A program made the position numbers and the translations under genes. A DNA stretch of 64,000 nt from Podarcis filfolensis (taxonomy: Eukaryota), in the NCBI GenBank assembly GCA_964270895.1, contig OZ185435.1; one strand, written 5' to 3'. Position 1 is the stretch's first letter. Every line of letters begins with the position of its first letter. Of this stretch, positions 1,114 through 33,500 are shown piece after piece. The notes under the pieces are model-generated. The model was not told the origin of the DNA. It made no database searches and saw only the letters and a program-made list of their open reading frames with translations.

Positions 1114-4100
1114 ACTGCCTCCAGATTGCCAAATGTCTCGAGGGGATGCGCCAGCGATGCTGCCGCCTGGATTGCGACTTGCAGGGAGCAAGGGAGAAGC
1201 TGCGCCAGTCGGAGTACGAATGTTCAGTCCTGGAAGTGAAGTTGAAACACGCCCGCAACCAAGTGGAGGTGGAGATGAAGAAAAGGCATCGGGCAGAAGC
1301 TGAGCTGGAAAAGCAGGTTCTTGGAGGGGCACAGTGGAGAAAAGTAGATGGGGGGACTTTTTCTCCCCTTCTCATGTTAGAATATGAGGCCATTAAGGAC
1401 AGACCATAAGGAAACTGCCTTGTACTGAGTTCTGGGTTTTGGTCCATCTAGCTTGGTATTTGTCTACATTGACTGGAAGCATCTTCTTTCCAGGGGCCAG
1501 GAGGCAATGACAGCCCTACCTGAAGATGCCAAGGATTGGACCTATCTGCATACAAAGCAGATGCTTTACCGCTGAGCTATAGCACTTCCCTACGTAGTTC
1601 TTCACAAGCTCCTAATTAAGGTGTAGCAAATTGTAGCGACAGCCACCAGTTTATATGGGTTTTAAAGATAAATGCATCATGTATAAGGCTATCAATTGCT
1701 GCCTGTCATGGTTGCTCTGTACTGCTTCCAGGATCTGTGGTAGCAGGCTTCTGCATACCAATTGGTGGGAGAACAAATAGCAAGAGGGGGCTGTCCCATC
1801 CAGAGGCCTAGGCTTTCCAGAGGCACCCTCTGAGAAACAGGATACAGGACCTTTGGTCTGATCAACAAGACTATTTAACTTGAAGGACCTGTATCCCACT
1901 GTTCATTGCCAAAAAGCACTTCCAGGGTGGGTAACAGTGAAAAGTAAAATTCATATGCCGAAAAGCAACAGCAGAAAACAAGAGCAAATAAGATTCCAAC
2001 CAAATAATGATGCCCGTCGTATTATGTTCTTAGGGCGATAAAGCCTAGTAGGTGAATGGTTTGTGTTGTGTCAGAGTGATGCATGCTGCGAAGAATAATA
2101 TCTAAACCTGGAGCGGGGAGGTGCTGCCACAGAACTTGGGAACTAAAGAGATGTGGCTGGAGCAAGAAGGAAGTTTTAAGCACAACCCGAATAGAAGCTA
2201 GTGTTTGGCACGATAGATGGACAAGAGACTGCTGCAACTACAGCTGTGCTGTTTCAGGTCTCATAAAAGCTGCCAGGAGCTGATGTGACTCAGTAGCTTA
2301 GACACTGAGCTATGCAGCAAGCAGGTGGAAATTTACTGTTCTCATGAAATTAAGACTGCAGAATTTTGGACTTTGGGAGCACAGAACTTGGATGTATTTA
2401 GTGCATAGTCAGTTGCAGTCCTGGACATGCATCCCAGGCAAAAACAGTTCACTTGCATTAGGTTGGCTTGGGAGAACTAGGTGCTCCCCACCCTAAGGAG
2501 GGATGTACCAGTCTGAACATAGTTACAGCTGCAAAGCGGCTGCACTTGAAGACTGCTACATTCTTCATTCCAACAGGGTCTCCATTGTTCTACTCACCCC
2601 TCACCCCTTTTCATCCCTCTCAGGAGCGCAAGCTGCAGCTTATCTATGACTACCTGATGGCTGATTCACAAATCAGTCCTTTCAATGAGGACCAGCGCTC
2701 AGCCCTGGCGGCTTTAGAAAGGCCACGTTTCAGCCACAGCACCCTGCTGCCTGGCAAGTGGTGAGTGGCAAGGGAGTACTTACGACAGCTGATATTGCAG
2801 CTTCTCTCAGGCAAGCAAATCAATCCCTGAGTCCTGTCTGGATATTTTTGTTTTTAAAAATGGGCATATGTAAATCTCTGGTTTCACACATGCCACAAAT
2901 CATACAATAATTGAAATTCAATCAAACAGTTGTGTATTGTGTATACATCCTACAGCCCAAATACCATATTTTTTGCTCTATTGGACGCACCGGACCACAG
3001 GACGCACCTAGTTTTTAGAGGGGGAAATCAAGGGAAAAAATATTATCCCCCCCCCAGCCCCAAAGAGCAAGGGACAGGCTGCGTGCAGCCTGTCCGCTTC
3101 TCCCAGAGCTTCTCGGGGCTGCGGGGGAAACCTGGGTCCCCCCCCCAGCCCCAAAGAGCAAAGAAGCCAAGACAGCGAGCAGGATCCATAGCCGCGCAAC
3201 CTCTCCAGCCAGAAGCTAAACCTCTCCAGCGCAGCTAAAGAAGAAGACAAGGCAGCGAGCGTGATCCATCCCGCTCACTGCCTTGGCTTCCTCTTTAGCC
3301 TTGAGCAGCATCTTTAGCCTTGCGCAACGGGATGGATCGGGCCCGCTGTCCACCGGGGCTGGACTAGATGACTCCTGGGGTTCCCTTCCCACCCTGCAAT
3401 TCTATGACCTTGGAAGGTGTTGGGGGTCTCCACCACTGGAGGCTTTTAAGCAGCAGTTGGGGGACCATCTGCCTGGCGTTCTTTAGCTGTGATTCCTACA
3501 TTGTGAGGGGGCTGGGCTAGATGACCCTCGGGTGGCCCTCCCAACTCTATACAGTCCTACACGTCTGCGGCAGGAGATCCACAGCCACTTCACACAATGC
3601 CCACTCCCAATTTTCATTGGAGAGACACGTGGCTTCAGTGTCTAGGTAGGTACCCCCCTACCTGCCACTCTCCCCCCACCCCACTTAAGCCGAGGGAATT
3701 CCTGCCCAGAGAAGCTCCCAGGTGAGGCAAGGGTTAAGATCTACCTCTGGTAAATGGCTTTCCCTTTTCTCTTCTTCTTCTGTGCTATTTCCTTCTTTTG
3801 TGTTTTGTTTAATCTGTTTTTATTGTATACTAAAATAAAAGCTGCCAAGTTTCCTTTTTTATAATATCCCCCCCTCCAAACTAAAACGTTAATCTAGATA
3901 AAAACACTGATCCAGAGGAAAAGAAGGCGGTGGAGAAAGGACGAAAAAAGAAAAAGAGGTAGAGATAGAGAAATTTTTTAAAAGTCTTCTTTAGCCTTGC
4001 GCAGCCTCCCGCGACTGGAGAGGCGCAAGGCTAAAGAGGAAGCCAAGGCAGCGAGCGTGATCCATCCCACTCGCTGCCCGGGCTTCCTGGAGAGGCGCGC

Positions 4101-7100
4101 AAGGCTAAGGAGGAAGCCCGGGCAGCGAGGGGATGGATTGCGCTCACTGCCCTGGCTTCGTCTTTAGCCTTGCGCAGCCTCCCCGCGGCTGGAGAGATTG
4201 CGCAAGGCTTTTCTAGAGGAGGGAGAAGGGACTGACTGGCGGTGTCAGTCCCTTCTCCCTCCTGGGGAAAAGCCCGCAAGAGCCGCACGAAGCTTGTGTG
4301 TTGCTCTTGGGGGCTTTTCCTGCCTGCCTCCCCCCCCCTGCATTCGCTCCATAGGACGCACAGACTTTCCCCCTTAGTTTTTAAGACGGAAAAACTGCGT
4401 CCTATGGTGCGAAAAATACGGTACATAGCAGATCAGTTTTATCTCTCAGCTTAGTTGCCTAATTCCTGCTGGTTCCAATAATGGGCAGAATCAAATTATT
4501 ACTGTTTGCAGAAAGTTTCTGGTGATTCAGATGTGCAGGTAGTTGTTACNNNNNNNNNNNNNNNNNNNNNNNNNNNNNNNNNNNNNNNNNNNNNNNNNNN
4601 NNNNNNNNNNNNNNNNNNNNNNNNNNNNNNNNNNNNNNNNNNNNNNNNNNNNNNNNNNNNNNNNNNNNNNNNNNNNNNNNNNNNNNNNNNNNNNNNNNNN
4701 NNNNNNNNNNNNNNNNTTCAAAATAAATACCGATATACTGGTGTGAATATCCACATTCAGAACAGGGGTGCCAACTTGAATAAAACATTGGGGGGCCCAT
4801 GTAGGCATCAACCTGCATGTTTCATTCCATGACACAGTGTATACACACCATTTGCATGGCAATGCCCATCAACTATTTTATTGGGGGTGCAAAGACCCTT
4901 TGGCCCCTAGGAGTTGGCTCCTATGATTGAGAAGTAGTATAAAAAAAACCAAGTGCCAATTCTACAGGTTTGAAGGGGCCCCTTGAAATGCATACTGAAA
5001 ATAACAATAATGATAGGCAACTAGTTCATATGCAAACCCACAATGCCAGAACAACACAGCAAGTGTGTTAATGTAGCTTTCCCACAATGGTATCCCCACA
5101 TTAAAAAAAAACAAAAAACGATGGGTGTTTGGAGAAGATACTGGATTAGAAGAACTGAGCTATATAGCAAGAGTGGGAGAGACAGGCATGATATGAGGCT
5201 GTTATTTGTGATACAGCCCCTGTGTTACTCTTCTCTGTAGGCCGTCTGCAGTGGAAGGACTTGGCGCCTCAATCATATCTGACATCAGCTTTGATCACTC
5301 GGATGACGAAGTGGTAAGTAAGCATCCCTTCCTCCCAGGCTTGCCAGGTCAGAACTGAAAGCTCCAGGACACAGTCAGACTCTTGTGTTTACTGTTGACT
5401 GAGATCTCTGTGCTCTACAGGAGCAGAAGCCAAGGCTTCACACTTGAAATCGATGGTGCCACACGTACTACTGCAACAGGCCCTGCATGTTGGTGTATGT
5501 TTTCAGAGATACACATCAATATGAACAGAGACAGTATATGTGGAAGGGAGTTGGTTTGAAACAAAGTAACATATTTTTCCATGTATTAGACGAGGGGTTT
5601 TTTTACTTAAAAAATTATGTTAAAAATCTTGGCTCGTCTTATACATGGGTAGTGCCGAGGGAGGACGTGCGATTGGCTGCTGCCACGAGTTGGAGTTTCT
5701 CAGTGACGATAGGGCGGCCGATTGGTGGTTTTGGCGAGTTTTTTTGGCGATTGGCTGCCGCAGCAGCAATTGGGTAGCCCCGGCAATGCATGAAATTGTC
5801 AGTGTATGTGCAATTCTGGGCAGTCCCCCCCAAAAGAGCTTAACAACTCTTGGCAATCTCCCCCCATTTTCTTAATTTTGAGTCCCCAAAAATAGGGGGC
5901 GTCTTATACACGGGAGCATGTTATACACGAAAAAATACGGTACTCTTTCAGGGGGAATTATGCTTGGTCACCAAAGGGAGAAAATGCATGTGACATATTA
6001 AGAGCAACCGTTTGAAAGCACCCTTGTGGCACTTGTATGCCCAAAACAGTAAAAATTTCTGTTCTACGGGGAGAGAACCAGTTATGCAACATTTTAGTAA
6101 AATTTGGTTTGAACTAGGGAAAGCCAGCTGTGAGGAGCACCTATTGTGAAGTGCATGTATTGCAGCACCATCATACCCTCCCCCTTCTCCCCAGATTTCC
6201 AGAGTAGTCTTGCAACTATTCTAGCAACAACAAGGGAAAGCAAAATAGCTTTGCCGTTTTTAAAAAGACTAAACGATGTGAGGAGGAGCAGGACTAAACC
6301 AGCCTTTGACGTAACTGGTGCGTATTTGTGTAAAGCAAGTTGTCAACACCCTTCATAGGTTCAAACATTTATTTGCTGTTTTGGGGTGAGAAATGGGCAC
6401 CTTGTTCTAATGAAAGCACAGATTATTTGGAGACCAGATACCGTGACAGGTGTAATGTAGTTGAATTGTTTATTTGCGTATTTATTATTGCATTAATACC
6501 TCGCTCTTCCTCCCCAGGTCAACAAACAGATACACAACTTTAAAATTAAGCAAAAACATTCTAAAACGGTTAAAAACATATGAACACAGCTTCAGTTCAA
6601 AACATTCTTCCATCCAATGGTCGTGGGGTTGCCAGGAACTATTCCTCATCCCCCAAATGCCTGGATAAACAGGGATGTTTACAAATTCCTCTGTAAAGTT
6701 AATTATGATGGAGGCAGGCACACCTCCTAATGCAGATTGCAGGCAACTCTGTACTTATTACTTGATGGTAAAAAAACAACAACACTCAAAATACTTTACA
6801 TAAAGAATAAAGTAAAAACAATTACAACTTTTTTAAAAAATGAAATAAAACCAGCAACAAACTAAAAGCACACCAGCAATCTACTTGACTATAGCCAGAA
6901 TGCCAGGGTTTAGGGTAGCTTCTTGCAGAAAACAAGAATATGGAACCTTAGTAAGAAACATGTGTGTTGTTGATGAATACAAGTAGACAGATTCTTATAG
7001 CTATTGAAACACATGTGCATACTGTGAATGCTGAAGAGGCTTCTGGGATGTAGATACAATCTGATACAGGTGGCTATATGCAGAAGCTTTTAAAAGGATG

Positions 7101-7101
7101 C

Positions 7102-7132
<31 letters not shown>

Positions 7133-10100
7133 TGTATGTATGTATACACACAGTTCAAAACTTGAGATGGGAAGAAGTGGCAAGATGTGCTCAAGCTCAG
7201 GGTGGGCCTTCATTTTAGTAGCCCATGAGCTACAAATGTGTCTACATCCTTTCTCATGCTTTCCTTTTCTGTTTTCTTCTAGGATTTGGAAGTGATAAAA
7301 TCCCTCAAAGGCAGAGACAAAGGGGTAAGTGAAGGTGGTGCTGGGAAGCATCCTGTCCTTCAGCTGCCACATATTCCAGAACTGAAGCACCCATCCTATA
7401 TTAGTCCTGTGTGCCTGCCTCAAACATCTGTTTCATCAGAGACCACAACTGGACAGAAGGAGATAAATCTTCCTTACGCATATGCAATTCTAATTACACA
7501 TTCAAATATTTGAAAACGTCTTCGTCTGTATCCCACCATTTACTTTGCTCTGTCTTGTTGATAGTCTGAAAAATGGCAAGCAATTTGTGCTGAGCTTCTC
7601 TCACCTGGAATTACGTGGATCTGTCTTCCTGTTGCTCTCACACCTGTTTCTCTCTTCCAGTGCTCCTCCCTCGTGCCCCTGATTCAGCCAGTGGCAACAA
7701 CCAAATCTGCACAAACATCTGTGGCACCTCCGCCTCCTAGTGTAAGTACCTGGCGATGCCCTCGTGTGTATCTCTGTGCGAGGGAAGACCCAGCCTGCAA
7801 CCTTTGACACCATTGAAAAATCAGCTCTGATAATAAATGGCTCTGATAAAAAGATATTGCAATGTGGTAGATTGCACAGCAGGGTATGTGTTATACGTGG
7901 CATGATCAAACAGGGCAATGAAGCTTCAAGTAAAACAGGGGGTTTCCCTTACGTTCTGCAAGCTCTTAGGGTTAAGATTCCTTTGAACGTGTGTGTGTGT
8001 GTGAATAATCCTGCATCCTTCATTTAAAGGGGTTTGATCAAGACTGTCATTCATCATTCTCTGCCCCTCCCCTCCAATCTTGCCAGGCCAATAAGATGTC
8101 TGTGGCGACTCTGAGATCCGGAGCCACTGCCCACGTTTTGCCCCCTATTCCTGTGGTGCCCCGTCGCCGATCCCAGCAGAGACGTTGCCTGTCCACACGC
8201 TCAGGTGCCTCTTCCCTCCTTCTTTTTTGGGTGTGGCCTGGCCTGTTCTGAAGGTGGGCAGACATGGTTAGGTAATGAGTGTTGACAGAAGGTTTAGCAG
8301 TAGAACTAGAGAATATGCTGCAGTAAGCTTTTCCATTTCCAAAATGGAAAATAGGCTGTTCCCAGAATGCTGTAAAGGGAGTTGGGGACAGTGAAGGGAC
8401 AAAAGATCCTGTTCTGCTTGGGCTCCTCATTGCTATCCCGTTTTCCTTAGTTGTAAGTGGGGATGGGGAATCTACTCAGTACATGCTCAGGGTACTTATG
8501 CCTTTCCTTTGAAGAAAGGGTGTGCAGTCCAAACAGATTAGGAGGTGGTGCTGGTTTAGAGGAGGAGGAGGAAGTGTAGAACCACAAAACCACGAGCCAT
8601 GTTATGTGCAGGAGACTGGCAGGCAGACCCTGAGTGTGTCCAAATGGTTTAATAGTGATCTCAGATGTGTAGGTTTGTATTCATAGGAGCTAAAATAGCA
8701 AGAATGGCTTTATGAGGAGCAGGGAGATATTTGGCTTGTCTCCCCCTCCTTTAAAGATGGGGTCTGGTTTGCAAACTTTTGAGTCCATTCTCCCACCTGT
8801 CTGTCCTCTGGACAGTTGACCGCCACCATGCTCCCAAGCCCAGGACCACTGGAGGGGATTGAGCAAGTTGTCTGCCCCACCTTAGCCCAGGTTCCTGGCC
8901 AACTCCGTCCACACAGAGCAGTCACACTGAGCTCTGGATTGTGGGCTTCTGCACCCCCAGGGCGTCATACTCCAAATGGGAGCCTGCAGATGGAAGTAGG
9001 CAGACCAGTGCTAAGATCCAACAATGCCTTCTGGGAGGTGGCAGCTTGAACGCTGGACGAAAGTGTCCATGCCTTTAAATGTGTCTCTGATGTGTGGTCT
9101 TCTCTCCACAGACGTCACTTCCTTCTGGGGCAGCAGTGAGGGGTCAGGCAGAAGTACCGGTAATAGCCAGGCTGAGAGTGACACCATTGGCACGAAGATT
9201 AGGACTGAGTTGAGGGGTGTTCAGGACCCCTTTTCTCCTTCTCCCACACAGGGAACACCACCCCTCCAAGAGCACCACTTTACTTCCAAGACGGTGAGAA
9301 AAGAGGAACAGGGCTGCCTCTCAGCAACGACCTGAGCTGGAGTGCTTATCTGCTGGGATGCTTTCAAGTGCTCTTAATGATAGGTTGACTGGGTTCTCCT
9401 AAACCAACCATCTGCATTTGTTTCCAATTTTGTGCAAGTCTCATAACTTCCTGTTAAAATCTTGTAACACTGCATACCACAAAAGTTCTGCTTCTGTCTT
9501 GCCCAAGAGCGCTCACCCTGGTGGCAATCATGCAATAACATTTTGAAAGCATCTCAGGATAGCTGATAAAGTGGAATGATGTGTGGGTTCTCCAGTACAA
9601 ATCCACCACTAAGGAACTAAGGATCATGCCAGTAACATGTTGTGGAATATACCTACAAAAAAAAGCTCCATGAAGAAGAGATCGGGGTGGGGGGCAGGCA
9701 GGGGCAGCACCAGAGGCTGTGCCACTTGGACTCTCCCCTCCCCACCTACCCCTGGGCCAACTATGCTTTTTGTATCATTTATTTGATGTTTTAAAACTGT
9801 CAACCGCTTTGGCAGAAAGGCAGTGTATAAATGCAATAAATAAATCCAAGAGCTCCATTGGACAAATTCAAGCTAGAGGGATATTGTACAAAGGGGCAAG
9901 CTATGGGAAGCCTGTGGTCTTTTTCCTCTTGATCTCTGCTGTGCTCATCTAATGCTCTTCCCTCTTCCCTGGCTACAAGATGATCAGCCTGGAGTCGTGT
10001 GCGGTTTGCAAATCCCGCCTGCGCTTTGGGAAGATGGCCCTGAAATGTCGGCCCTGCCAGCTTGTAGTGCATCCTGAGTGCAAAGAACGCAGCCCATCCG

Positions 10101-13100
10101 TGTGCAGGCCGACTGCCTCCCCCAGAGCGAGAGAGGTGAGGACGCTTCCCTGGGATGGGAGCTCATGGGGCTTTTATTGCAGTGCTGCCGGCTTTGCCGG
10201 GGGCAAGAGCAATTCGGGAGGCTGGTGTGACTTGTGTGTGGCAGGTATGGCTGAGCTGTTTCCCCCCAATCCACATTGATGGCTACTAGCCATGATCAAT
10301 GGCTACGAGCCACAATGCCTGTGTTCTTCCTCCACTGTCAGACAGTATACCCCCGACTACCAGCTGCCTCTTCTAAGGTTCCCCGTGTCTTCTCAGGGCA
10401 TTCTGGCAGATTTTGCACCCTCCACCCCACCTCTGGTGCCCCCACTAGTCATCCAGTGTGTGAATCAAGTGGAAAGGCGTGGCCTGAAGGAGGTAAGTGC
10501 GTTGGGGGGGGCAGCAGTGGGGCTCTGAAAGGCTGGTTGAGCTGCTGATGGTTTACTCTTAACTGTCATCAACCTGGATTTCCACATCTAATTCTGTCAC
10601 TGCACAACTTCTGTGATATTTTTCTTTTTGCCCTACTTCCCCTATGCTAGCTGTTGGGTTAGAGGTGTTGCATTTAGTTCACTTGCTTCTCCTGACTTCT
10701 GAGCTTCTTTTCCTTTTTCATCTTGGCTGGTGGTTTGGTTTTCTAATGCATTTTTAATATTTGTATATTTCTGTTCACTGGCTACTTTTTCTTCCCCAAA
10801 TTCCTCTCAGCCTCTTTAGGCTCTTGATAATCTTACTTCTGATCTCTGCTGCTGCTGCTGTTCTCCTTATCTGTCCCCTCGTTCTTTGCATTCTGCATGC
10901 TCTGAGCTTTCTCATTGGACATCCTGTGTTGGTGTTGCCTGCTCTGACCTTCTCCCTAGGCCTGGAACTCTCTGCCTCTGCTACCCTCCTTACTGGTGGT
11001 GGGAGATGGGCTTGCATACCCAGTGCCTGTTTTTATCCAGCCACAGGAGTTAATTATATAATTCCAGGCCCAATCCAAGGCCCTGTCTTTCACATTTCAA
11101 GTCCTAAAGTATCCATGAGGGTGTGGCATAACACAAAATGGCCGTGGCATCTTTAAAAAGCAGAAAGAGGCAAGGCCACAAAATGGTGCTGGCAGATGCT
11201 TCTGACTAGTGGTAATGATTCCAGGCTTGAAGTGCCAGCTGGGACTGTACCTTAGTGGCCGTTACAAGCTTTTGTGTGTGCATCTGTTCCTCTTGTCTTT
11301 TGCTCCTCGTGATCTGCAGGCTGGGCTATACAGAGTGCCAGGTTCAGAGCACCTCATTCGAGAATGGAAGCGCAAGCTGCTTTATGCCCGAGGAGCACTT
11401 CCCTCACTGGACCAGGTGGCTGATGTCAATGTGATCTGTGGGGTTCTCAAGGACTTTCTGAGGAGCCTGAAGGAACCTCTAGTGACCTTTGCCCTGCACC
11501 CTGCCTTCCTGCGTGCTTCAGGTAAGTTTGGACAAGGCTGTAGGTGGAAAGTGCCTTTTCTGGAGTGGTAGTAATGAGACCCCCCCAACCTCATAGCACT
11601 ATTTTCTTCCCACCCAGAAATTCCAGATGAAGCTGCTCGCCAGACTGCACTCTGCCATGTTGTGATGAAGTTGCCCCTGGCCAATAGGGACACTCTGGCT
11701 TTTCTGGTGCTGCATCTCCATAGGTAAGCTGGTGAGGGCAGATTTTAGGCTTGAAGGGATACCTGGGACTCTAAAATGTGCAAAACTTTCCCTCAACTTG
11801 GTGGAGATTTCTGCCTTGGCAAAAGGTGACACTGCATGTTCAAGCCATGTATTTTCCTTTGAAACAACATAATACTGTTTCTGCATGTTAGGAGTGTTGT
11901 GAATTTGCTTCCCCATTTGTAAAGGCAGAGGCCTTTACATTTCATTTCATAAAGGTCTTCCTTTTCTTAATTTTCTTACTCTGTACAAGGGCAAGCAGAT
12001 AAGTATCTGACAATTGTTCCATCATCAATCCTTGTTGAAAGTGCTGGCTGCACCACTTGCTACTGTGGGTATTTTCCTGTCTTGCACAATAGGTTTGAAC
12101 ACCACTCTTTTCTGTTCATTGATTGGATCCACAGTAACTGTTCAGAAACCTGTTTTGGGGCACTTATTTGCTACATCAGATAATGCACTTCTCACTTAAA
12201 AGAAACAAACATAATGGATATCTGTTGCATCAAACGGTGTCAGGAATACATTTTCTGCTAATGAGGGGTTTTGTCTAATCTTGTCCCCTGCAATTGTCTT
12301 GTGGGCTTGGTTGCTTCACCCATTGTGTGGCCTGTGTGAACCATGGTTTCTGACCCCGCTCTGATGCCCACCATCCATGTTATGGACACCCTGAATGTTA
12401 TGGATATAGCTGGGCTTTGTACCTTTGGGTTAGAGGATTCTGCTTTGGCCTTTGGCCTTTGACTCCATGGATCCATCTCTCTATCCTTAGGGTCATGCAG
12501 AGCCCTCAGTGTCGAATGGACCGGCACAACCTAGCACGTATCTTTGGACCGACTCTAGTTGGGCACGGTACTCCTAGCCCTTCCCCACGGATCATCATGG
12601 AAGACACACCACGTCAATGCCTGGTAACAGATGTAACCTGTATTTGTTACTTGTGTGCAGTATTTAATTTTTTTCTGACCCTCTGTGGGACTGCAGGAAA
12701 GACTGCACAATGCTCAGACTGTACATCAAGCAAAATCCTGATGTAGTTTGGAACTGAGGATTGATTATTTTTGTTGCACCAGGGTAGCTCTTGTGAACTC
12801 AGTGGAATGTGGGGAGGTACCCTGATCTTGGAGAAATGCTTCTGCTAATTGTGACAAAGGCAGGAACAAAGTCCTGACTGTGGGAAATCCTGCTTACTTC
12901 TGAGACTTTGCCAAGCATTTTAAACAGATTTTTAATATTATATTTTTGTCTTACGGGCTAGAAACTTGCTTTTTTATATTAAAAGGTGGGGGGAGCTGAG
13001 ATTCCCAGAAACGCTAATTTTAGCCCAGTGCAAAATTCAGCAAGTGAGCCCTTGCTATGTGCCATGGCTTCCTTATTCCATAAAATTTCATAAGAGCATA

Positions 13101-14539
13101 AAAGCTGCAGTGAGAAATTCAAAAGTCAAGGTAACAAATGGGGTGTAACTGACTGCCGCTTAATCAGTGCTCTTGCATCTCAAGTAGTAGAGTTCAGAGA
13201 ATTATTCTGAATGCTTTGTTTCAAATATTAGCTTGTGAGAGTGCCAGCTTTCACTGTTCCTCCAAGCTTGCGTTTTTGCAAGCTCTCATCTCTACCACAT
13301 TGTCAATAAATTTATGATGAGAACTGAATCCATGTGAAAACAATGGGCAGATAGACACTTCTGTGGAACATAAGCTAGAACCAGCTAATGAAGGCCCGGT
13401 GGGGCAGATAGGGAAGAATTTCCATGATTAGGCGGCAGACAAAAGCTAACATGATTCCATTCCCCCGCAGGTGGTTAGCAATCTCTTAGCACTGCCTCTT
13501 TCGTTCTGGAGACATTTTGTGGGAGAAGAGCAGGAGAACCTGGTGCCTTTGGTGCAAAAGCCCAGCATCGTGAATGAGCAAGGTGAACTGAAGTGTGGGT
13601 GGCTTGGGGAGGAAGAAATATAAGAGCCCCATCCTTACTCAGTTTTGGTGATCCTCCGAAGGACAGGGTGGTGGTGGTGGTGGTGGTGGGGAGCTAGACC
13701 TAATACTTCCCTCCAACCTTCCACCCACAGACCAGATCTTCTTTCCTCTGACTCCCCCTGAAGTCAGCACCATCCATATGAGCCCAGGAGGTGGCTGTCT
13801 CCCTAATAAGCTATGGGACTGCATTGGGACCACCTTCCCACCCTCGTAAGTGAGCTGGCACAGCTGCCTGGGGTGCATTTTGTGGGGTTGCAGGGGAAGG
13901 GGACCTGTGAGCTGAATGCAGCCATCAAGGCCTCCTTGTCGGGTCTCCCTGGACTTTCCCCTCACAGATACTGCTCCACTCCCTGCTTTTGCCTAACTGG
14001 AATGTGCTGTTAAACTATGATGGTGCTCTGCTTGTCTGGATGGAGAAGTAGCGAGTGTCTGTTTGGGTGTGTGAGAGAGAACTTCTGGTTTTCGTATGGC
14101 TGGAACATAGTCCAAAGATAGTCAATGATAAGTCACACCGGCTGCTCTGACCACTTTTGCTTCCGGCCCTGCTCACCACTAGTTTGCCACACCAGGAAGG
14201 TCGCCTGTGAGGGAAGGCTTTCTTCCGGCTGAAGAAGATTCCCCAACCCTGCTGCTACTGAGTGCTGCTACCATCCTTGGATAAGGACTGGGTTTGTTTG
14301 GGAAGGGTTATCAAACTCTTGTTGCCACAGCTGTCCATGTGCCCATGCCCCTGAGGTGTGGAGGCTCCTACATGTTGTGGGGGTTCTCTGACCTTCCTTT
14401 CACCTGCCCAGAGGGGCTGCTGCCAAGGGGGCTGCCATAGATGTCCACTCTGGGGTCTCCCTCTCCTGTTTTGTCTTCTGCCAGGAATGCCTCCCGCACC
14501 AAGAAGACGGGCAAATTCTTCCCACTTCCAGTATCATGA
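1114..14539 (+). CDS. RACGAP1: RACGAP1/MgcRacGAP/CYK4-like Rho-family GAP (divergent paralogue; coiled coil, C1 domain, RhoGAP domain); 15 coding exons in window, 5'-incomplete
   Basis: Exons with AG/GT boundaries and consistent phases: 1114-1316, 2624-2760, 5241-5313, 7283-7324, 7661-7741, 8087-8204, 9112-9293, 9980-10135, 10397-10492, 11320-11521, 11618-11723, 12491-12623, 13471-13582, 13731-13845, 14485-14539 (TGA 14537-39). The joined frame is open for about 602 codons. Diagnostic peptides: VLEVKLKHARNQVEVEMKKRHRAEAE, SDISFD, a complete C1 Cys/His set, GLYRVPG, LKDFLRSLKEPLVTF, LPLANRDTLAFLVLHL, NLARIFGPTLVGH. Several exon sizes (203, 137, 81, 118, 96, 106, 133) match those recalled for human RACGAP1. 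The symbol names the closest known homologue; this gene is probably a paralogue, not the 1:1 orthologue. Confidence 0.92.
1408..1590 (-). mobile_element. tRNA-headed squamate SINE remnant
   Basis: Reverse-oriented tRNA-like head (ggattggacc...gcagatgctttaccgctgagcta) plus a body shared with copies near 25903-26070, 35438-35520 and 39108-39260. Confidence 0.55.
2964..4421. mobile_element. Non-autonomous Tc1/mariner(pogo)-type element with CC(G/A)TATTTTT TIRs, composite interior
   Basis: TA-flanked imperfect TIRs of about 26 bp (CCATATTTTTTGCTCTATTGGACGCA and the reverse complement of TGCGTCCTATGGTGCGAAAAATACGG). The interior has GC-rich palindromic repeats and CR1 tails. Confidence 0.7.
3357..3560 (+). 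mobile_element. Two CR1-type LINE/SINE 3' tails
   Basis: ggactagatgac...ccc...attctatga and ctagatgaccctc...ccaactcta motifs typical of sauropsid CR1 3' ends. Confidence 0.65.
4550..4716. other. Assembly gap (167 N)
   Basis: Run of N, located in a RACGAP1-like intron. Confidence 1.
5569..5940. mobile_element. Mariner-type MITE (CCGTATTTTT-type TIR)
   Basis: TA + ACATATTTTTCCATGTAT at the left end; ATACACGAAAAAATACGG + TA at the right end. Confidence 0.65.
7103..7142. repeat. (TATG)10 microsatellite
   Basis: Read directly from the sequence. Confidence 0.97.
13667..13687. repeat. (GGT)7 microsatellite
   Basis: Read directly; lies in the short intron 13583-13730. Confidence 0.9.
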
Positions 14540-21439: not shown

Positions 21440-24400
21440 TTAAGAGTTTAGGGCATCGATACCTGCAGGCGTGAGAACCAGGGCTTGGAGAATGTCAGAG
21501 AGGGACACGATCCCCCGCGGGGTTTTCTTCTCATCCACCAGAACCAGACGATGGACCTGCCAGATGAGTGAGCCACACACCATCACGGAGAGAAGAGTAC
21601 GGTAACGGGATGAGCCGAGATGAGTGCTTGACATCCACAGGGCTAGAGTTACCCCTCCCTCCTGAGGCAAACCTCAGAAACGTTTCCCTTTGGTGGCATA
21701 ATGCTATTATTATTATTATGAACATCATCACCATCCTAGTACAGCAAGATAGCCGAGGGACAGGGCATTCTGGGAAAAGTTACAATTAAGAGTGGCAGGC
21801 AGGAAAGTTAAAGCTGGGTGCTGTTGCGCCGCCTATTAGCCTTTAGTTGCAGAGGAGCAACTGTGCTGTACAGAAAATGAGTCTAGGGCTGCTTCCCACA
21901 TTATAATTTTTTAAGGTATGTGTCTTTGCATATGGAAACACCTGTTTGCTTCTAGAATGGGGAATCTGTGACCCTCTAGGTGTTTTTGCTGAACTACATT
22001 ACCCTTCATCCCTGACCATTGACCATGCTGGCTGGGGCTGATGGGAATTGGGGTCCCAACGCTTTGTGAAGGACCACAGGTTCCCCACTGGTTCAGTAAA
22101 TCATTACACGCAACAGACAGATGTTTCCCACCATATGCATGAGACCTGTATGTGCAGCAGGGAGCTGGGACTTGCCATGGCTTCCTGCTGTATGGCAGCA
22201 AACAGCTGTTTTCTCTCATATAACATGTGAAGCAGCCTTTAGGTGTCCAGTTCTCATCAGCTTCTGAAGATGGTTTCACTTACCTTGGGGACCACCCACC
22301 TGAGCAAGCTACCTCTTCTGTGCGGGCTCTTGGCTTTCCCCGTGGACCCCCCTTTTAAGTGATTCATTGGGAATAGCTTCTACCCTGGAGAAGTCTCATG
22401 AGAATTATTTTGGGAGTTTTTGCTTTTTTGCTTAAATGGTTGGAATACAGTATTCCACAATATTTCCCATCCTTTTCCTAGGGCCTGTAAGCCACTAGTG
22501 TGGACTTGTCTCTTCCATGAGTGTCATGGGGAAGAACAAGCCAGAGATGGTTACTGCTGGAACACCTATGCCAAGAGAGCAAAGTCAATCAGGCGACAGG
22601 ATTAGAGGCTGACTGGATTAGAAAGTGTCACTGGGCATGACTTGAGTAAGCAGAAAGTAGAGACAGAAGAGGTTTAGGCTGAACATTTAACTCCTGAAGT
22701 CAGATTTTATGGACCTGGAGAGGTCAAGGTCTTGCCACAGAGTAACTGTTACCTAAAGCTGCACATTCTTCCTGCTCCACTCTGGCATACCTGCTCCTTG
22801 GCGATGCGATCAATAATGTCTTCCATCGTTTCATAAGGATGGCAGGTGAGCACCCCTTCCAGGCAGACTGAGCGCTGCTTCAGTGCTTCCCCCACAGTAA
22901 TGTCCAGGTTGTTGTAGGACTTCTGGGCAGCCAAGTGCTAAGCAGAGACAAGGAAATGGTTTGAAGCCACCATGACAGATCATCCAGGCAGGGGCTTGGC
23001 ATTAGCAGAGAATAAAGCTACCCCAATCCCACTTTGCATAGGTGGGAGAACTCTAACTTTAATATCCAGGTAACTCTTGCTGAAACAAGGCTCAGTTGCT
23101 ACACACTGGTTTAATGCACCTTGTGACAGCCACTTTGATAAATGGACCCTAATCCGCCATCAATTTAGAGTCACAGCCCTGGAGACAATGTTCTCCTTTG
23201 CTTTTCACCCTATGTTTAAGAGGGAAACTGCTGCTGACTTCTCTGTCTAGAGCTGAAAAATAGTAGTGAAAATTAGTAACACCACCTAAATCCCTTTAGA
23301 TAGATGGAGTTCAGGAAACATTTGTGAAGGATACCAAACCACACACACACACACTACCAAGTGATGTTCCCATCTTAAAATTTTAAACAGGTACTGCATC
23401 CCCTAGAGGTAAGACAGGGAAACATTCTATTTTCTTAGCTTTAGCTATTAAAAAAATCCATTCTCCCGCCAACCAACTTCACACCTGCAAAAATATGATT
23501 GTGCTGTACTTACAATCACATCAAAGCGAGAGTAGAGGCCAACTACCCTCCCTGTAAAGAGAAAGTGAGGGAAGCATTATAAGGGACTCAGTAGAGAAAA
23601 CCCTCCCATTCACCCACCTCATAATGTAGCTATCATCCATTTTTAAAAAGTATTGATATATTTAATACGTTCCAACTAAGCAAGTATTCCATATGTATTA
23701 ATCAGAAAAATAATTAAGAAATACCCGATAAAAGAAAATATCCACTGACAATAAAGTCTTGAATAGAGCTAGACACAGAGCATTATTCATTCATATTATC
23801 ATATATGTGAACACCACTTTTCCAGGCTTTTATCACATCTTGAAGTTCATAGTTAATACATAAAAAGAGGGTTCCTGATTTTATGACAGCGGGTGGAATT
23901 TACAAAAGTGACAACATCTGGGTGATGGTGATTCAACACTATCTCTGAGATGTTACATATAGCACTATGGGTCATTGGCTCAAGCAGGGTGGGTGGGATT
24001 CAAATATGGAACCCCAAAACGGTGCAGCTTGGCAAAAGATGCATCACAAGATTGGCTTGGATTGTTTGATAAATGTCACATAGGGTTTGTGGAATTTCAG
24101 GGCCCAAGAAAAAAGTAGAGGCTGAATTAGAAAGCTGATAACCTATGAGAGAGAGGTAAGGCTCAGCTGAAACGGCAAACATAGCGGTGAGCAGAGCAGA
24201 GGAGCTCCCCGCAGCAAGTACCGGTACCTTTTTCATTAACAACAGGCAATGCTGAGACCCTGCGGTCCACAAAAATCTCCAAGGCTGTGTAGACAGGGGC
24301 TGACTCCAGGACCATGGCAACGTCACGGAAGGTGCCGATGCCCAGTTCCAGGATGGTTTTCTGCAGGAATCGTGGCTTTGGAAGCATGGCTCCCTGTAGT

Positions 24401-27400
24401 GAGAGAAGAGGAGGTTATTGTTTTCAGTGCATTATTGGTGATGCTCCCCCTGCCCCACAATGGAAATGAATGATGTGTATTCATACAATAATGTAATTAA
24501 TTGCATTCTTAAATTTGGCCACAGTGAACAGTGAGCTGGATAACATTTTTTTGCAGAAGCTGAACTGCAGCAGAATAGAAATAGAGCTGCAGACAATGAA
24601 TATGGGACAAAAAAGAAAATGATACCTTTTTACATCCCTAGTGGAGCCTAACCTCTTACTCTCCCAACTTCTACTGTTTTCCCAATTGTCTATTTTAGAT
24701 CGTGAGCATCTTGAGGGAAGTGGCCAGTCTATTTTTCCCTATGCAGCTCTGCAAGGCACCACGTACCCTGTTGGCTCTCTACCAATAAATAAATGATAAA
24801 AGAGAGCATCGGGCACTGGGCCAACATAGGCCCCACTGAGACCAAAAATAATCTGCCTTGCCATCATCTATGCCAAGAGGAATTTGGGACCACCAGACAC
24901 TCACGAAGATATGCAGGAACTTGAGGATACGTTTGTGGGTCAGAATGTGTAGGACGTTCCCTGAGATGGGCTCGATAACAGGCAGCCGATGGATCTTGTG
25001 CTTAATCAAGGAATAAACAGCATCAAATAGGCTAGGAAAGGGAGAAACAAAAGGGCAATATGACATGCCTGGAGATTGGCTCCCTGTACCCAGGGACTGT
25101 ACCCATTTACTGCTTCCACTTTGGGCATCGTGCAGCACAGCTGCTCTAAATGGAGTAGGCGTTGTGAGACAGTGAAGGTTCCCCCACCCCTATTATGGAC
25201 AAAGGCTCTGTGCATTCAGCTGTTTGACAGGCAGCAATCAACAAGTGAAGTGTTTCCTGGCAAGGAACTGATGAGTAAAACTTCACTCTTTTATACCAAC
25301 TGCCATGCAGTTGTTAAAAGTACAAGACTCTTTCCATTAAAGCTAGCCACACTATTATTATGTATTCATTAAAATTCTTTCCCACCTTTCCTGCCAAAGA
25401 GGAGGGATCTGTGGGAGGAGTAAGCAAGCATCAGGAATGACTTACCTATCATTTGGGGAGATGCACACCAAGGGTTTGAAGAAACCTTGCAAATACACCT
25501 CTGGGGAGAAAGGAAAGCGTCTGAATAGTATATGGAACCGTTGCCCTAGGTAAGATGGGAGAACTACTACAGGTTAAGGATGAAGCTACTTCTGTGAGGG
25601 GAGGGGAATCTGGCAAAAGAGGTCAGTCGGGTTTCCAATCTATTTAGAAGGATGTTGAGTTTCTGAGATTTTGGCATACAACAGCTTGAGGTCACTATAC
25701 CATATGGTTAATCACTGCCAAGTTGAAGATGATTTACCATAACATCAACTTTCTTCCCATGTTATGTGCACTGAAAGCATCTCAGAAATTGGAACAGTGA
25801 TTCAATGTATAATACTTTTTTTAAAATAATTTTATTATTTATATCCTGCCCATCTGGCTGGGTTTCCCCACTTTGAAGAGAGAAAGGGTACTATAGGTGT
25901 TATACTGAATCAAACCAATGGTCCATTTAGCCTAGCACTGCCTGCGTCCTGATTGGCAGCCACCCTCCAGGGTTTTAGCTAGGGGGCATTTCCCTACCCA
26001 AACAGGAGATGCCAGGGATTGAATCTCAGATCATTTGCAAGCAGAGCATGTGCTCTACCACTGAACATGCAAGCAGTGAGCAGATGGAGGAGGATCCTCC
26101 CTGAGCCTTGCACCTTCCCTGTGAATCAGGGGCAGCCCACATGGTGCCCTCCACATGTTGGATTTCACTTGCCATCATCCTTGACCATTGGGCCATGCTG
26201 GCTAAGGATGAAAAGAGTTGGATCAACATCTGAAAGGTACCGCATTAGCTGCCCCTCTTCTGGGTGGTTGTGTGGACCAAGCTCAAAGGGAGAGGGTAAG
26301 TAGAAACACTAGGGACAGAAATGGGACAGGATCCAATGAGCTCACAGCAATGGGCTACAGCACATGGAATTTCATCAGAATGCAGCAAAAGAGCCTGTAG
26401 TGCAAGGAGGGTGAACCTGTGACCCTCCAGATTGTTATTGGTCATCCTGGCAAGGGCTGATGGAGCCCATCAAAACCAGAAGTCACTGGTTTCCAATCCC
26501 TAGAGTACTGTAACCTAAACCCTTTGCCTAGGGGCTGGGGTGGCCAATGGGCCCCAACTCCCATCAGCCCTAGCCAGCATGGCCAATGGGAGGGAATTAT
26601 GGGAGCTGTTGTCCTTTAGATGTTGTTGGACTAAATGCTGGCCGCGCCTTGTCTAGAGGCAAGACTATCAAGTAGGAAGGGATACCAAGTTAAGAGAGGA
26701 ACTGTTTAAATCAAGGCCAGAAGCAGGGAGACAGACGTAAACATGTGCACACACACACACAGAGTGCAATTCACCTTCCACTGCTGACAATCAATTTTAA
26801 AGATATTCAATAGCATCCATGCATACACTACTCCCCCTAGTGGTGCCCTGCTCACCTCTCCACGTTTCAATTTTGTGTTCCTCGATCTCATATATCTGAA
26901 CCTAAAAACAGCACAAAATGATACTCGTAAGCAGGGTGATGTCACCCACAAAAGGATAAGATAGTGAGAGTTCCAAGCAGCCCAGACTTGTACTTTGAAG
27001 TCACAGGTCCTCTTGCTTCGCTGTCACCCCTCTGGCCCTGCCCACCCCCCTCCGTCCCTGTACATATTGGGAGGGAGATGCTGGAAGCTGGTTTGCTCCA
27101 GATCTTGCAAAGGCAAATGAGCAGTCCTGGAAAACTCACCAGAGGTGATCGGTAGTAGCGATGTAGGATGTTAATGAAGTCAGTGATAGTCAACATACCT
27201 GCAGTAAGAGAGAGTAGGGGGAAAGAGGAAAAGGAAGAGAGTGGATACACATAGGTGTAGGTCTGGAAGAGCTGAAGGGCTACCTTGTGCAGGCCCCAGT
27301 TCTCAGGACAGCAGATGGTTGAGCCTTTCCTTAATAAGGCACCTGCAGAATTCCTGCACACACCCAACCTTGCCTTCTTGACCATCCCTAGTACAGTTTG

Positions 27401-30072: not shown

Positions 30073-30544
30073 CTAGTGGGTAAGGGGAGGCATTGCAAAT
30101 CCAGACACCAAAAACTTCTTGGTAGGTGAAACATTTAAGTAATCTTGGCCCTTTTGACTGACACAACCTTCCCTCCTTCTCACTAAGCCTAAAGAAATGG
30201 TATGTTCTCACATAAACTGCAGGAACACGCATGCTGAGCTGAACAACCCATGACTTGCACAGAGAACCAGCCAAAAGCTGCAGCAGTCACTGACCAACCC
30301 TACCCCACCCTGCCCCACAGAGCACATCCAGTTAGTTGATTGTTTACATCCCTTGACAGGCAGCAACCCACACACTTCAGCCTAAGGTGATGGCATTCGT
30401 TGATTTCAGACAGAGCCCAAACTCTCTTCTGCAAATTTTACAGTAGAGGGGAAAGTGTAAAAGGGGCTAACTACTTGCTCTGAAAAAGCAGACCCGGTCA
30501 GCAGGGGCTGTATACTGTATTTATTCACACATTTCTGTGGCAGT

Positions 30545-32379: not shown

Positions 32380-33500
32380 ACGACACGTGCTTGCATTCTC
32401 TAAAAACAAAACGCGCGTGCGTTTCTCCCTTTGTCTTCAGAGCTTTTGTTTTTGTTCACCCGAATACTTGCGCGGCTCGCATTGATGCATAAGATTTATT
32501 TAAATCGGCAGCAGACGAGTCGGAGCACCGAGTTCAATTTCTAAACGCGAAATTGTTACGGGCCAAGCACGCCTAGGAATCGCACCCGAAGGTGTGGGAG
32601 AGAAAACGCAGAGGGGCAGGCAGCGCTCTGCACGTGCTCAAAAGCTCCGTTCTTGACACTCAAGGGTGTCCAATGAGCTTGGGTAGCACGTCCCGGGGCT
32701 CAGGTAAGCCCCGCTAGCCCCACTCCCCCGGCAACCCAAAGCAGGAAGTGGTCGCGGCGTTGTTGCGCCAGGAAGTGCCCTCCGTCCGTGCTCCCCGGGC
32801 CGGCCTGGCCGGCAGAAAGGCACCCGCCGCGAAGCCCTTTCTCGGGGAGGTCTCTCCGCCGGGCTTACCTGCTCCGAGGCCGGTGCCGCCGCCGCCGCCG
32901 CCCGCTCCATGCCGAGGCAGCTGCTATTTTCGGGCGCCTGGCCGGGGAGCCAGTCCGTGTCAGGAAGGCGGCGGGCCTGGCAGCAACACCCGGGTGCGCG
33001 CGGCGCCAGGAGGGGCGGAGGGGCCACCGCCTGCCGCGCTGTGCGAAGAAGGGCCTTCCCGCCGCCTCCCGGGGGACTCAGGGCAGCGCGCGGCCGCCTC
33101 CCGAGACGGTGGAGGAGGAGCAGGGCATGCCGAGAGCGGGGCTATCCCAGGAGGCGCCGAGGGGTCCTGGGGCGAGGGATGCGGCGAGGAAAGCGGGCTC
33201 CGCTGGGGGGACGGGACGGGGACGCGGCCTCTCGCTCGGGAAGCTTCGGGCGAAGCCTCCTGTTTGCCCTGGAGGGCGGGGGGTGGGGGGAGAGAGCGCG
33301 ACTCGGCTCCGGCTGTAAATAAATCACGGAATGTGCGAAGGGAGGAAGTCGGGGCACAGAAGCCTGTGCGCGGTGGGACAGCGTCTCGCGGGGTGGGAGG
33401 TGGGGCGAGGAGAAGAGATGATGGAGGCTATTGGGGGGGGCAGCCCCTCCCGGGAGGAAGAAGCAAAGGGGTGAAACGCCAGTGATGGGCCGAGGCCAAG
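32380..33500. promoter_or_regulatory. CpG island, probable PRKAG3 promoter region (possibly bidirectional)
   Basis: Sharp rise in GC and CpG content in an otherwise CpG-poor window. It contains tandem ETS-type CAGGAAGTG motifs (32742, 32769), CACGTG E-boxes, GC boxes and G-rich runs, and overlaps the candidate first exon. Confidence 0.8.
32869..32910 (-). CDS. PRKAG3: Probable first coding exon of PRKAG3 (MERAAAAAAPASEQ)
   Basis: Minus-strand ATG in strong context (GGC-ATG-G) inside the CpG island, followed by 14 codons and a strong donor CAG|GTAAGC. It ends in phase 0, so a small phase 0-to-1 linker exon is needed before the 30072 acceptor; the candidate is 31620-31650. Confidence 0.55.

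Follow-up and report, generated by a model that had tools for sequence, protein, structure and literature searches.

A second RACGAP1-family gene in the lizard Podarcis filfolensis, very probably an ohnologue of RACGAP1 lost toward mammals

Introduction

RACGAP1, also known as MgcRacGAP or CYK-4, is the GAP subunit of centralspindlin. Its N-terminal coiled coil dimerises and binds kinesin-6, and its serine cluster is phosphorylated by Plk1 and docks ECT2. Vertebrates are regarded as having a single RACGAP1/CYK-4 gene, essential for the organisation of cytokinesis. The home of human RACGAP1, 12q13, is paralogous to 2q35, and the gene pairs of this paralogon include PRKAG1/PRKAG3, WNT1-10B/WNT6-10A, DHH/IHH, PRPH/DES and ASIC1/ASIC4. 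In human, RACGAP1 adjoins ASIC1, and GMPPA adjoins ASIC4.

A gene annotated by NCBI as 'rac GTPase-activating protein 1-like' is already present in more than 100 genomes. Our literature search found no paper on this RACGAP1-like gene, and we know of no counterpart in the human and mouse gene sets. Here we describe the copy found in a 64,000-nucleotide stretch of Podarcis filfolensis DNA (contig OZ185435.1), which we refer to as the window. This gene is very probably the intact, transcribed lizard orthologue of a second vertebrate RACGAP1-family member, an ohnologue that encodes a CYK-4-type GAP and was lost toward mammals.

Results

The window contains exons 2 to 16 of a 16-exon RACGAP1-family gene on the plus strand, between positions 1114 and 14539. 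As the window begins downstream of the first coding exon, exon 2 starts at position 1114. In tblastn searches, the in-window exons corresponded to residues 44-647 of the Podarcis raffonei protein 'rac GTPase-activating protein 1-like' (P0162), with 85-100% identity per alignment, the low end of which reflects flanking non-exon residues. All 15 exons are bordered by GT..AG junctions and keep the reading frame throughout, with no stop codon before the terminus. Furthermore, contigs of 1960 and 777 nt from public runs (presumed to be RNA) of two related species skipped eight introns exactly at the GT..AG borders, which allowed us to read eight exon junctions directly and indicates spliced transcripts in both species.

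Where no other evidence is mentioned, exons were placed by tblastn to P0162. Exon 2 (1114-1316; phase 1 start, 98.6% identity) encodes the coiled-coil core KLKHARNQVEVEMKKRHRAEAELEKQ, and exon 3 (2624-2757) has two GT donors, both in frame and separated by 3 nt, so that it ends at 2757 or 2760. The letters of the window include an assembly gap (N, 4550-4716) within the intron 2757-5241, about 1.8 kb past the donor at 2757 and 0.5 kb ahead of the acceptor at 5241. Since orthologous proteins are continuous across the 2757>5241 junction, no coding sequence is missing at this gap. The next exon (5241-5313) carries the serine-rich SIISDISFDHSDDEV motif, which we take to be the counterpart of the Plk1/ECT2-docking region of RACGAP1. 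It is followed by four linker exons at 7283-7324, 7661-7741, 8087-8204 (with the basic stretch VPRRRSQQRR) and 9112-9293, the last of which encodes the first residues of the C1 domain at its 3' end (HHFTSKT) and is joined to the following exon in a contig (9293>9980). The zinc-finger exon (9980-10135; Pfam C1_1, 1e-8; contig joints) holds eight of eight zinc ligands. The RhoGAP domain is encoded by the exons 10397-10492 (also in spliced contigs), 11320-11521 with the arginine finger GLYRVPG (Pfam RhoGAP, 7e-13; PDB match; contig joints), 11618-11723 with NRDTLAFL (Pfam RhoGAP, 8.4e-6; contig joints), 12491-12623 with MDRHNLARIFGPT and 13471-13582, the latter two again covered by spliced contigs. 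The exon for the C-terminal tail (13731-13845; spliced contigs as well) is followed by the last coding piece (14485-14539), which ends in KTGKFFPLPVS with the stop codon at 14537-14539. The transcript extends beyond 14700 into a 3' UTR (contigs of X1 and X5).

When comparing gene structures, we found 16 coding exons in the standard RACGAP1 of Anolis sagrei and in each of four RACGAP1-like genes. Moreover, the phase series 1,0,2,0,0,0,1,0,0,0,1,2,0,1,2 occurs at homologous positions in all of them. On gene structure, the original prediction, which described 15 stop-free exons chaining in frame, with intron positions and phases mirroring RACGAP1, thus holds, all 15 intron phases being identical. 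As the complete set of 15 introns is kept, retroposition is excluded, in agreement with the same prediction.

The Pfam matches lie in the expected exons, and the best solved structure by sequence was human RACGAP1 (57 bits versus 31 for other RhoGAPs). By fold, too, the best match was the GAP domain of human MgcRacGAP (TM 0.93-0.96, 50-51% identity). For the P. raffonei protein, which is nearly identical, an AlphaFold2 model predicts a continuous helix over residues 11-124, with a block-mean pLDDT of 53-96 that exceeds 85 over about residues 41-120, followed by folded C1 and GAP domains and a disordered linker and tail. Among 41 RACGAP1-like proteins, the KLKHARNQ core of the N-terminal helix is invariant, as are S168, S171, S174 and D176 of the serine cluster, the C1 residues H317...C365 and R412 (41/41 each). 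In the wider set of 117 proteins, the arginine finger is kept in 114 and the C1 ligands in 109. The window gene retains GLYR and an intact ligand pattern (H-x12-C-x2-C-x12-C-x2-C-x4-H-x2-C-x7-C) directly before the GAP domain. It therefore encodes a RhoGAP with a catalytic arginine finger, as judged from Pfam, residues and fold, preceded by an atypical C1 zinc finger, and both its exon structure and its place in the gene tree are those of the RACGAP1 family.

The Podarcis RACGAP1-like protein is 43% identical to standard Anolis RACGAP1 in the coiled coil, 55% in C1, 51% in GAP and 19% in the linker. For standard Anolis versus standard wombat RACGAP1, these values are 83%, 94%, 83% and 76%, respectively. 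This agrees with the moderate similarity in the three conserved regions and the barely alignable linkers that had been predicted, and the predicted conclusion, that the gene is too diverged to be a RACGAP1 orthologue, was borne out by the maximum likelihood tree. Here, the vertebrate family, the standard gnathostome RACGAP1 genes and the RACGAP1-like genes each form a clade with 100/100 support, and the window gene belongs to the last of these, together with genes of rays, a sturgeon, teleosts, coelacanth, lungfish, amphibians, turtles, a crocodilian, birds and squamates. The window gene does not group with the standard clade, and one squamate, Anolis sagrei, carries both genes. Cartilaginous and ray-finned fishes, coelacanth, lungfish, amphibians and sauropsids are represented in both clades, and the CYK-4 sequences of amphioxus and echinoderms fall outside both. 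Within the RACGAP1-like clade, the basal fish branches are unresolved, with the rays placed inside the clade at 81/80. Both clades hold cartilaginous as well as bony fishes, which dates the duplication of the RACGAP1 family to the interval between the divergence from amphioxus and the diversification of extant jawed vertebrates. Lamprey and hagfish sequences join the standard clade weakly (81/76), and because of this placement both 1R and 2R are possible for the duplication. Of the predicted 'probable 2R ohnologue', the ohnologue part is supported by an ancient paralogue in a 2q35-type block, and the assignment to 2R becomes one of two options.

The window also contains the AMPK-gamma and TTL-domain genes that had been predicted. 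The first, a PRKAG3-type AMPK gamma-subunit gene (21443-30286, minus strand), is arranged tail-to-tail with the RACGAP1-like gene, encodes CBS domains and has AMPK gamma-1 as its best PDB match. The second is a tubulin-tyrosine-ligase-like gene (45248-60133, minus strand) with Pfam TTL in three exons, which we assigned to the TTLL4 type on the grounds of synteny and of its large N-terminal exon. The gene order in Zootoca and Anolis sagrei is p450, RACGAP1-like gene and CBS gene, the latter in the same position as in the window; the squamate neighbours of the RACGAP1-like gene are CYP27A1 and PRKAG3. In ray, turtle and owl, a GMPPA-type gene lies downstream of the RACGAP1-like gene, followed in owl by SPEG, and in anchovy TMEM169 lies upstream. 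The common GMPPA-type neighbour indicates, independently of the tree, that the ray, turtle and owl genes are orthologous. The location next to PRKAG3 stated in the original prediction is therefore true for squamates but not for ray, turtle and owl: the ancestral site adjoins GMPPA, and the adjacency to PRKAG3 is squamate-derived. The human counterparts of these neighbours presumably all map to 2q35.

Annotated orthologues were found in squamates, turtles, a crocodilian, birds, caecilians, a newt and a frog, and on the fish side in lungfish, coelacanth, rays, a sturgeon and some teleosts. The gene is hence retained in squamates as predicted but is not specific to them, as most of the non-mammalian jawed vertebrates sampled keep it. 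In one assembly of Anolis sagrei, the RACGAP1-like gene and standard RACGAP1 are located on two different chromosomes. Both copies also occur together in the sauropsids Malaclemys, Emydura, Struthio, Dromaius and Passer montanus, and in Geotrypetes, Rhinatrema, Leptobrachium, Protopterus, Latimeria and Thalassophryne. For squamates, the presence of standard RACGAP1 is based on Anolis sagrei and on the king cobra, in which a RACGAP1 was placed beside AQP6 (PMC4245216). Members of the RACGAP1-like clade are labelled plain 'RACGAP1' in Pogona, Anolis carolinensis, Gallus and Calypte. No mammal was found among the best 120 matches listed for a RACGAP1-like query, nor among close representatives. 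A loss of this copy in mammals is consistent with everything we saw.

The RACGAP1-like copy has an evolutionary rate 4-8 times as high as that of standard RACGAP1. Nevertheless, dN/dS of the window gene was 0.21 when compared with king cobra and 0.20 with owl, and the copy has been under long-term purifying selection. Against Zootoca, the closest comparison, we obtained a value of 0.64, which comes from 63 differences only and is not significantly below 1 (p = 0.07); by part, it was 0.95 in the linker and 0.38 in C1 and GAP. Constraint on the gene may be relaxed in lacertids. The window, P. raffonei, Lacerta agilis and Zootoca all have an uninterrupted reading frame.

Discussion

Introns, AU tests and tree rule out that the window gene is a retrocopy, a recent duplicate or a RACGAP1 orthologue. 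The idea that the lizard has no RACGAP1 other than this gene, which would then be the orthologue of the mammalian one and evolve fast, could appeal to the plain name 'RACGAP1' in the four species mentioned above. However, a standard copy is present beside the RACGAP1-like gene in Anolis sagrei, turtles, birds, amphibians, lungfish and coelacanth, and this, with the full support for grouping with ray and fish genes and the 2q35-type neighbours, leaves the idea with next to no credibility. It is just as hard to believe that the gene arose by a recent duplication in squamates, sauropsids or tetrapods and was drawn to the base of the tree by its fast evolution. The RACGAP1-like branches are indeed long, and long branches can attract, but uniting the squamate RACGAP1-like and standard sequences in one clade was rejected by the AU test (dlnL 368, p 3e-39), as was one clade of all tetrapod sequences (dlnL 183, p 2e-44). 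Moreover, the RACGAP1-like clade largely follows the species tree, with amphibians, turtles, crocodilian, birds and squamates resolved as expected, and its ray, turtle and owl members share their GMPPA-type neighbour.

With an ancient origin, the pair could still stem from a small-scale duplication before the jawed-vertebrate radiation instead of a whole-genome duplication. Only two copies survive, so that the tree alone does not separate the two modes, and the cyclostome placement is weak. Against this speaks the location of the copy in a block paralogous to the home of RACGAP1, since a single-gene copy would have had to land by chance at the matching site (ASIC1 versus GMPPA-ASIC4), and the full intron set excludes retroposition. 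We consider a small-scale origin unlikely and infer that the early vertebrate genome duplications produced the RACGAP1-like and standard genes, which makes them ohnologues. The lacertid gene might also be a transcribed but dispensable relic drifting toward loss, as the dN/dS values against Zootoca, overall and in the linker, would allow, along with the 0 and 2 reads that two bulk RNA-seq runs of one related species contained for it. The intact frame in four lacertids, the lower dN/dS in C1 and GAP and at longer distances, the conserved catalytic and zinc-binding residues and the existence of correctly spliced transcripts make such a decay very unlikely, and we favour a functional ohnologue.

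Because every RACGAP1 module is retained (the 110-residue N-terminal helix, the invariant serine cluster, C1 and RhoGAP with its arginine finger), the RACGAP1-like protein would most likely dimerise and bind membranes as a Rho-family GAP of the CYK-4 type. Its use would be limited to certain cells or divisions, with the essential standard copy working alongside. A more speculative proposal, which we put forward tentatively and regard as rather doubtful, is that, in most jawed vertebrates outside the mammals, a second CYK-4-type subunit forms an alternative centralspindlin-like complex with a kinesin-6 (and ECT2) in specialised divisions, and that in mammals, which lost this subunit, its role was taken over by RACGAP1. 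Candidates for such divisions would be those of the germline, of the early embryo or with incomplete cytokinesis. If such a complex exists, work on cytokinesis in chicken, Xenopus-like animals and fish has overlooked a partly redundant player.

Most classes of jawed vertebrates have thus retained, for over 400 million years, a second, structurally complete member of the family; the species that keep it include the chicken, a standard model of cell biology. It adds one further ohnologue pair to the well-known 12q13/2q35 paralogon and offers a natural experiment on the indispensable parts of CYK-4, in which the coiled-coil core, serine cluster, C1 ligands and arginine finger are fixed and the linkers are free to vary. 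It also shows that gene names are unreliable here, as the name 'RACGAP1' stands for the RACGAP1-like paralogue in the annotations of several birds and lizards; expression or knockout results obtained there may consequently concern the wrong gene.

Among known systems, the chimaerins (CHN1, CHN2) also combine a C1 domain with a Rac-type RhoGAP domain immediately after it and were the next-best fold matches. In contrast to the RACGAP1-like protein, they have an SH2 domain and lack the N-terminal coiled coil, and they reach only 28-30% identity and 29 bits, versus 57 for RACGAP1. RACGAP1 itself shares with the RACGAP1-like protein the same order of coiled coil, serine-rich motif, C1, RhoGAP with arginine finger and disordered tail, as well as the 16-exon structure with its intron phases and the vertebrate family clade, and the human MgcRacGAP GAP domain superposes on that of the RACGAP1-like protein with an rmsd of 1.2 A. 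The RACGAP1-like gene differs in being a separate, faster-evolving gene on another chromosome, in a 2q35-type block, with an identity that drops from 43-55% in the folded parts to about 19% in the linker, and in having no mammalian member among the matches listed. In sauropsids its product lacks the standard linker motif TTVTVP..AVSTIETVPYW. Finally, it has Pro after the arginine finger, whereas standard gnathostome proteins have Ser (Ser387 in human structures). The sample of lamprey and invertebrate family members is small, but most of these also have Pro at this position, which suggests that Ser arose within the standard gnathostome RACGAP1 copy.

Structure of the RACGAP1-like gene

Hallmarks of RACGAP1 were readable in stop-free pieces of the plus strand between 1114 and 14539, among them the coiled-coil core KLKHARNQVEVE, the C1 finger and the RhoGAP exons with GLYRVPG, NRDTLAFL and FGPT. 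Both C1_1 and RhoGAP were matched by Pfam, each in the exons where it would be expected. Among PDB sequences, the best match of the main GAP exon was human RACGAP1 (57 bits, the next RhoGAP scoring 31), and the coiled-coil exon had no match there. With the main GAP exon as query, an exhaustive HMMER scan covering 1.84 billion cluster representatives gave a distinct top group at 69-80% identity, with all others at 62% or less. From the full-length members of this group we arrived at snake, lizard, turtle and bird proteins named 'rac GTPase-activating protein 1-like'. One annotated protein of this name, P0162 of Podarcis raffonei, was used as a near-identical stand-in for the whole protein in searches and folding; the exons of the window were searched separately.

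Alignment of P0162 with the window gave 15 colinear pieces, each 85-100% identical, where flanking non-exon residues account for the lower values. From this alignment, and by joining some 20 codons spanning each junction to choose the splice sites, the plus-strand exons were placed at 1114-1316, 2624-2757 (or 2760), 5241-5313, 7283-7324, 7661-7741, 8087-8204, 9112-9293, 9980-10135, 10397-10492, 11320-11521, 11618-11723, 12491-12623, 13471-13582, 13731-13845 and 14485-14539. All junctions are GT..AG, the frame is kept and stops are absent, which confirms the original prediction of an intact gene. In relatives the first coding exon encodes 27-43 residues; here it lies beyond the upstream edge of the window.

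At the exon end 2757 (window 2755-2766), a second in-frame GT donor follows 3 nt on (GTGAGT at 2761), and the two possible donors would give ..PGK-PSAVE.. or ..PGKW-PSAVE... The same junction reads KR in Lacerta and Zootoca and KCR in P. raffonei X3, and is thus variable among lacertids. The following intron, between 2757 and 5241, holds an N gap at 4550-4716, far from both of its ends. An exon concealed in this gap was ruled out, since the orthologous proteins are colinear and continuous from exon to exon over the junction. The same intron carries a pair of 64-nt inverted repeats (3243-3306 and 4023-4086; 84% complementary), which are probably two oppositely oriented copies of a short interspersed element. 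Other introns contain a (TATG)n microsatellite of 10.8 copies (7103-7145) and, after 13582, a G-rich simple repeat (13658-13698) where the read search skipped reads. Retroelement-like ORFs fill the first intron at 1-996, for instance 233-583 with the Cys-rich motif CWKC..HMWWMCP; Pfam gave no match for these ORFs. Alignment with the Zootoca intron is confined to 997-1113, the remainder upstream being occupied by the retroelement-like insertion.

Standard RACGAP1 of Anolis and the 'like' genes of Zootoca, owl, turtle and anchovy have 16 coding exons each, and these five genes have the phase series 1,0,2,0,0,0,1,0,0,0,1,2,0,1,2 in common at homologous positions. The gene therefore mirrors RACGAP1 in intron positions and phases as predicted, and its full set of introns excludes an origin as a retrocopy. 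In the king cobra (L003, 23403-24035), the annotation divides the 'like' gene into a 482-residue 'RACGAP1, partial' model and, directly after it, an 82-residue gene, which holds the exons matching window 13471-13582 and 13731-13845.

The 'like' genes form an ancient clade separate from standard RACGAP1

Database representatives of the 'like' protein came from caecilians, a newt, a frog, the coelacanth, lungfish, rays, a gharial, a sturgeon and some teleosts. For many of the species with a 'like' protein, a lamprey-seeded search also listed standard RACGAP1: Anolis sagrei, four turtles, many birds, caecilians, axolotl, frogs, lungfish and coelacanth. One shark and the wombat were listed as well. 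Teleost standard copies were obtained with the cichlid standard RACGAP1 (P0255) as seed, a search that returned teleosts alone. Two fragments among the representatives were identical or nearly so to human RACGAP1 (P0096, 100%; P0073, 99-100%), and neither entered the final tree or served as a query for further searches; P0096 and a 64-residue stretch from the PDB match were used in local pairwise comparisons, and P0096 was also one row of a quick tree.

In the final maximum-likelihood tree (55 sequences, 631 columns, LG+C20 PMSF), the vertebrate family, the standard gnathostome clade and the 'like' clade, which spans rays to lizards, were each supported at 100/100, with amphioxus, echinoderms and coral outside the vertebrate family. 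The 'like' clade mostly matches the species tree; its basal fish branches were unresolved, with the rays within at 81/80. Two lamprey genes and a hagfish gene attach weakly to the standard clade (81/76). Of the two genes of Lampetra planeri (P0433 and P0031), one is short-branched and the other very long-branched. Retention in squamates, as originally proposed, holds for lizards and snakes but is too narrow, as rays, fishes, amphibians, turtles and birds have the gene too.

Could the gene be a fast-evolving orthologue of RACGAP1, or a recent squamate duplicate? Forcing the squamate 'like' and standard sequences together cost 368 log-likelihood units (p-AU 3e-39), and the single assembly of Anolis sagrei carries both genes, on different chromosomes. 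The tree, the AU tests and the two Anolis chromosomes therefore exclude both explanations, and the 'like' clade is not nested among squamate RACGAP1 sequences. A duplication at the tetrapod level was excluded as well, since uniting all tetrapod sequences cost 183 units (p-AU 2e-44).

The 'like' gene was already present in public annotation under the uninformative '-like' label, or as plain RACGAP1 in several birds and lizards. In NCBI, the '-like' label is used for two distinct kinds of protein, because the 'RACGAP1-like' proteins P0042 and P0276 of Odontesthes and Leuresthes fall outside the ancient 'like' clade, as a divergent extra copy in the teleost standard clade. Full-text literature searches gave no paper recognising or studying a second vertebrate RACGAP1. 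In the king cobra, a RACGAP1 has been placed beside AQP6 (PMC4245216); the 'like' gene of this snake has no aquaporin neighbour, which is consistent with two RACGAP1 genes in the cobra likewise. No mammalian member was among the matches listed, and we infer that the 'like' gene was lost in mammals. The 'like' gene adds an unstudied member to a known family and is of moderate relevance, chiefly for researchers of cytokinesis and genome duplication.

Synteny and probable origin by genome duplication

The neighbour of the 'like' gene in the window, placed tail-to-tail with it, is an AMPK-gamma (CBS) gene, in line with the predicted PRKAG3, and a TTL-domain gene follows. Between these two neighbours, a GC-rich island (32600-33600; GC 0.55 in a 2-kb bin) has long ORFs on both strands that gave no match in Pfam; the island may be a promoter or a first exon. 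A p450 gene, the 'like' gene and a CBS gene follow one another in this order in Zootoca and Anolis sagrei. A ray (Mobula), owl and turtle have a GMPPA-type nucleotidyl-transferase gene as the downstream neighbour, with SPEG next in the owl, and in anchovy TMEM169 lies upstream. In human, CYP27A1, PRKAG3, TTLL4, GMPPA, SPEG and TMEM169 are all located on 2q35. The paralogous block of 2q35 is 12q13; there RACGAP1 adjoins ASIC1, and GMPPA for its part adjoins ASIC4.

Cartilaginous fish and archelosaurs have the GMPPA adjacency in common, so that it is likely to be ancestral. Adjacency to PRKAG3 would then be derived, and this change of neighbours within one chromosome block, from the GMPPA-type gene in ray, turtle and owl to a place flanked by p450 and AMPK-gamma genes in Anolis, Zootoca and the window, points to a squamate rearrangement. 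A single-gene duplication could also have produced the second copy, but it would have had to land at the matching position of the paralogous block, which is less likely. The synteny fits an ohnologue pair of the 'like' gene and standard RACGAP1, and the proposed origin as a sister copy from vertebrate genome duplication is supported.

Selection and transcription

Measured between the same two species, paths through the 'like' clade were 4-8 times as long as paths through the standard clade. Using Nei-Gojobori counts per exon, which were then summed, dN/dS of the 'like' gene was 0.21 against king cobra (484 codons, dS 0.87) and 0.20 against owl (dS saturating). Against Zootoca, with only 63 differences, it was 0.64 and not significantly below 1 (p = 0.07); by part, the values were 0.38 in C1 plus GAP and 0.95 in the linker. 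Long-term purifying selection is clear, and the constraint is lower than usual for an essential gene.

In two small runs, presumably of RNA, from two related species (97-99% identical), Logan contigs of 1960 nt (depth 31) and 777 nt omitted eight introns, in each case precisely at the GT..AG borders of the gene model. Most simply, these spliced contigs are mRNA. Additional contigs extend beyond 14700 as 3′ UTR. Run X1 gave a 695-nt contig (depth 14; window 13817-14514) unspliced across the last intron (13846-14484), which indicates intron retention or pre-mRNA beside the spliced form; together with low-depth intronic pieces, it fits pre-mRNA. Bulk RNA-seq of one related species, in two runs of which about 12% each was scanned, yielded 0 and 2 reads of the 'like' gene, so that its expression may be limited to certain tissues. 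RACGAP1 is named in a paper on chick brain and in another on gecko testis, where either paralogue could be meant.

Comparison with RACGAP1 and other RhoGAP proteins

An alignment of 41 'like' proteins that ranges from rays to lizards shows no variation in the coiled-coil core, in residues S168, S171, S174 and D176 of the SIISDISFD motif (numbered as in P. raffonei), in any of the eight C1 zinc ligands, or in the arginine finger R412, K451, N497 and R498. GxYR is present in 114 of 117 full-length members and the C1 ligand pattern in 109. The N-terminal coiled coil of RACGAP1 binds kinesin-6, its C1 domain binds membrane lipids, and its serine cluster is the Plk1-dependent docking site of ECT2. 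By analogy, the 'like' protein would act as RACGAP1 does, in kinesin-6 binding, ECT2 docking and contact with membrane lipids.

Two places after the arginine finger, in GLYRVPG (window 11329-11340), 101 of 114 'like' proteins have Pro, whereas standard gnathostome RACGAP1 mostly has Ser. This Ser is numbered 387 in the structures of the human protein and is mutated in PDB 3wpq and 3wps. In a 16-row alignment, amphioxus and one lamprey copy also have VPG after the finger. Furthermore, the linker motif TTVTVP..AVSTIETVPYW of standard RACGAP1 is absent from sauropsid 'like' proteins. The AlphaFold2 model of P0162, made with the 'like' alignment, has a single long helix (11-124); its C1 and GAP domains are modelled with confidence, and its linker and tail are disordered. 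The GAP domain of human MgcRacGAP superposes on that of the model with a TM of 0.93-0.96 and an rmsd of 1.2 Å, and the chimaerins are the next-best fold matches.
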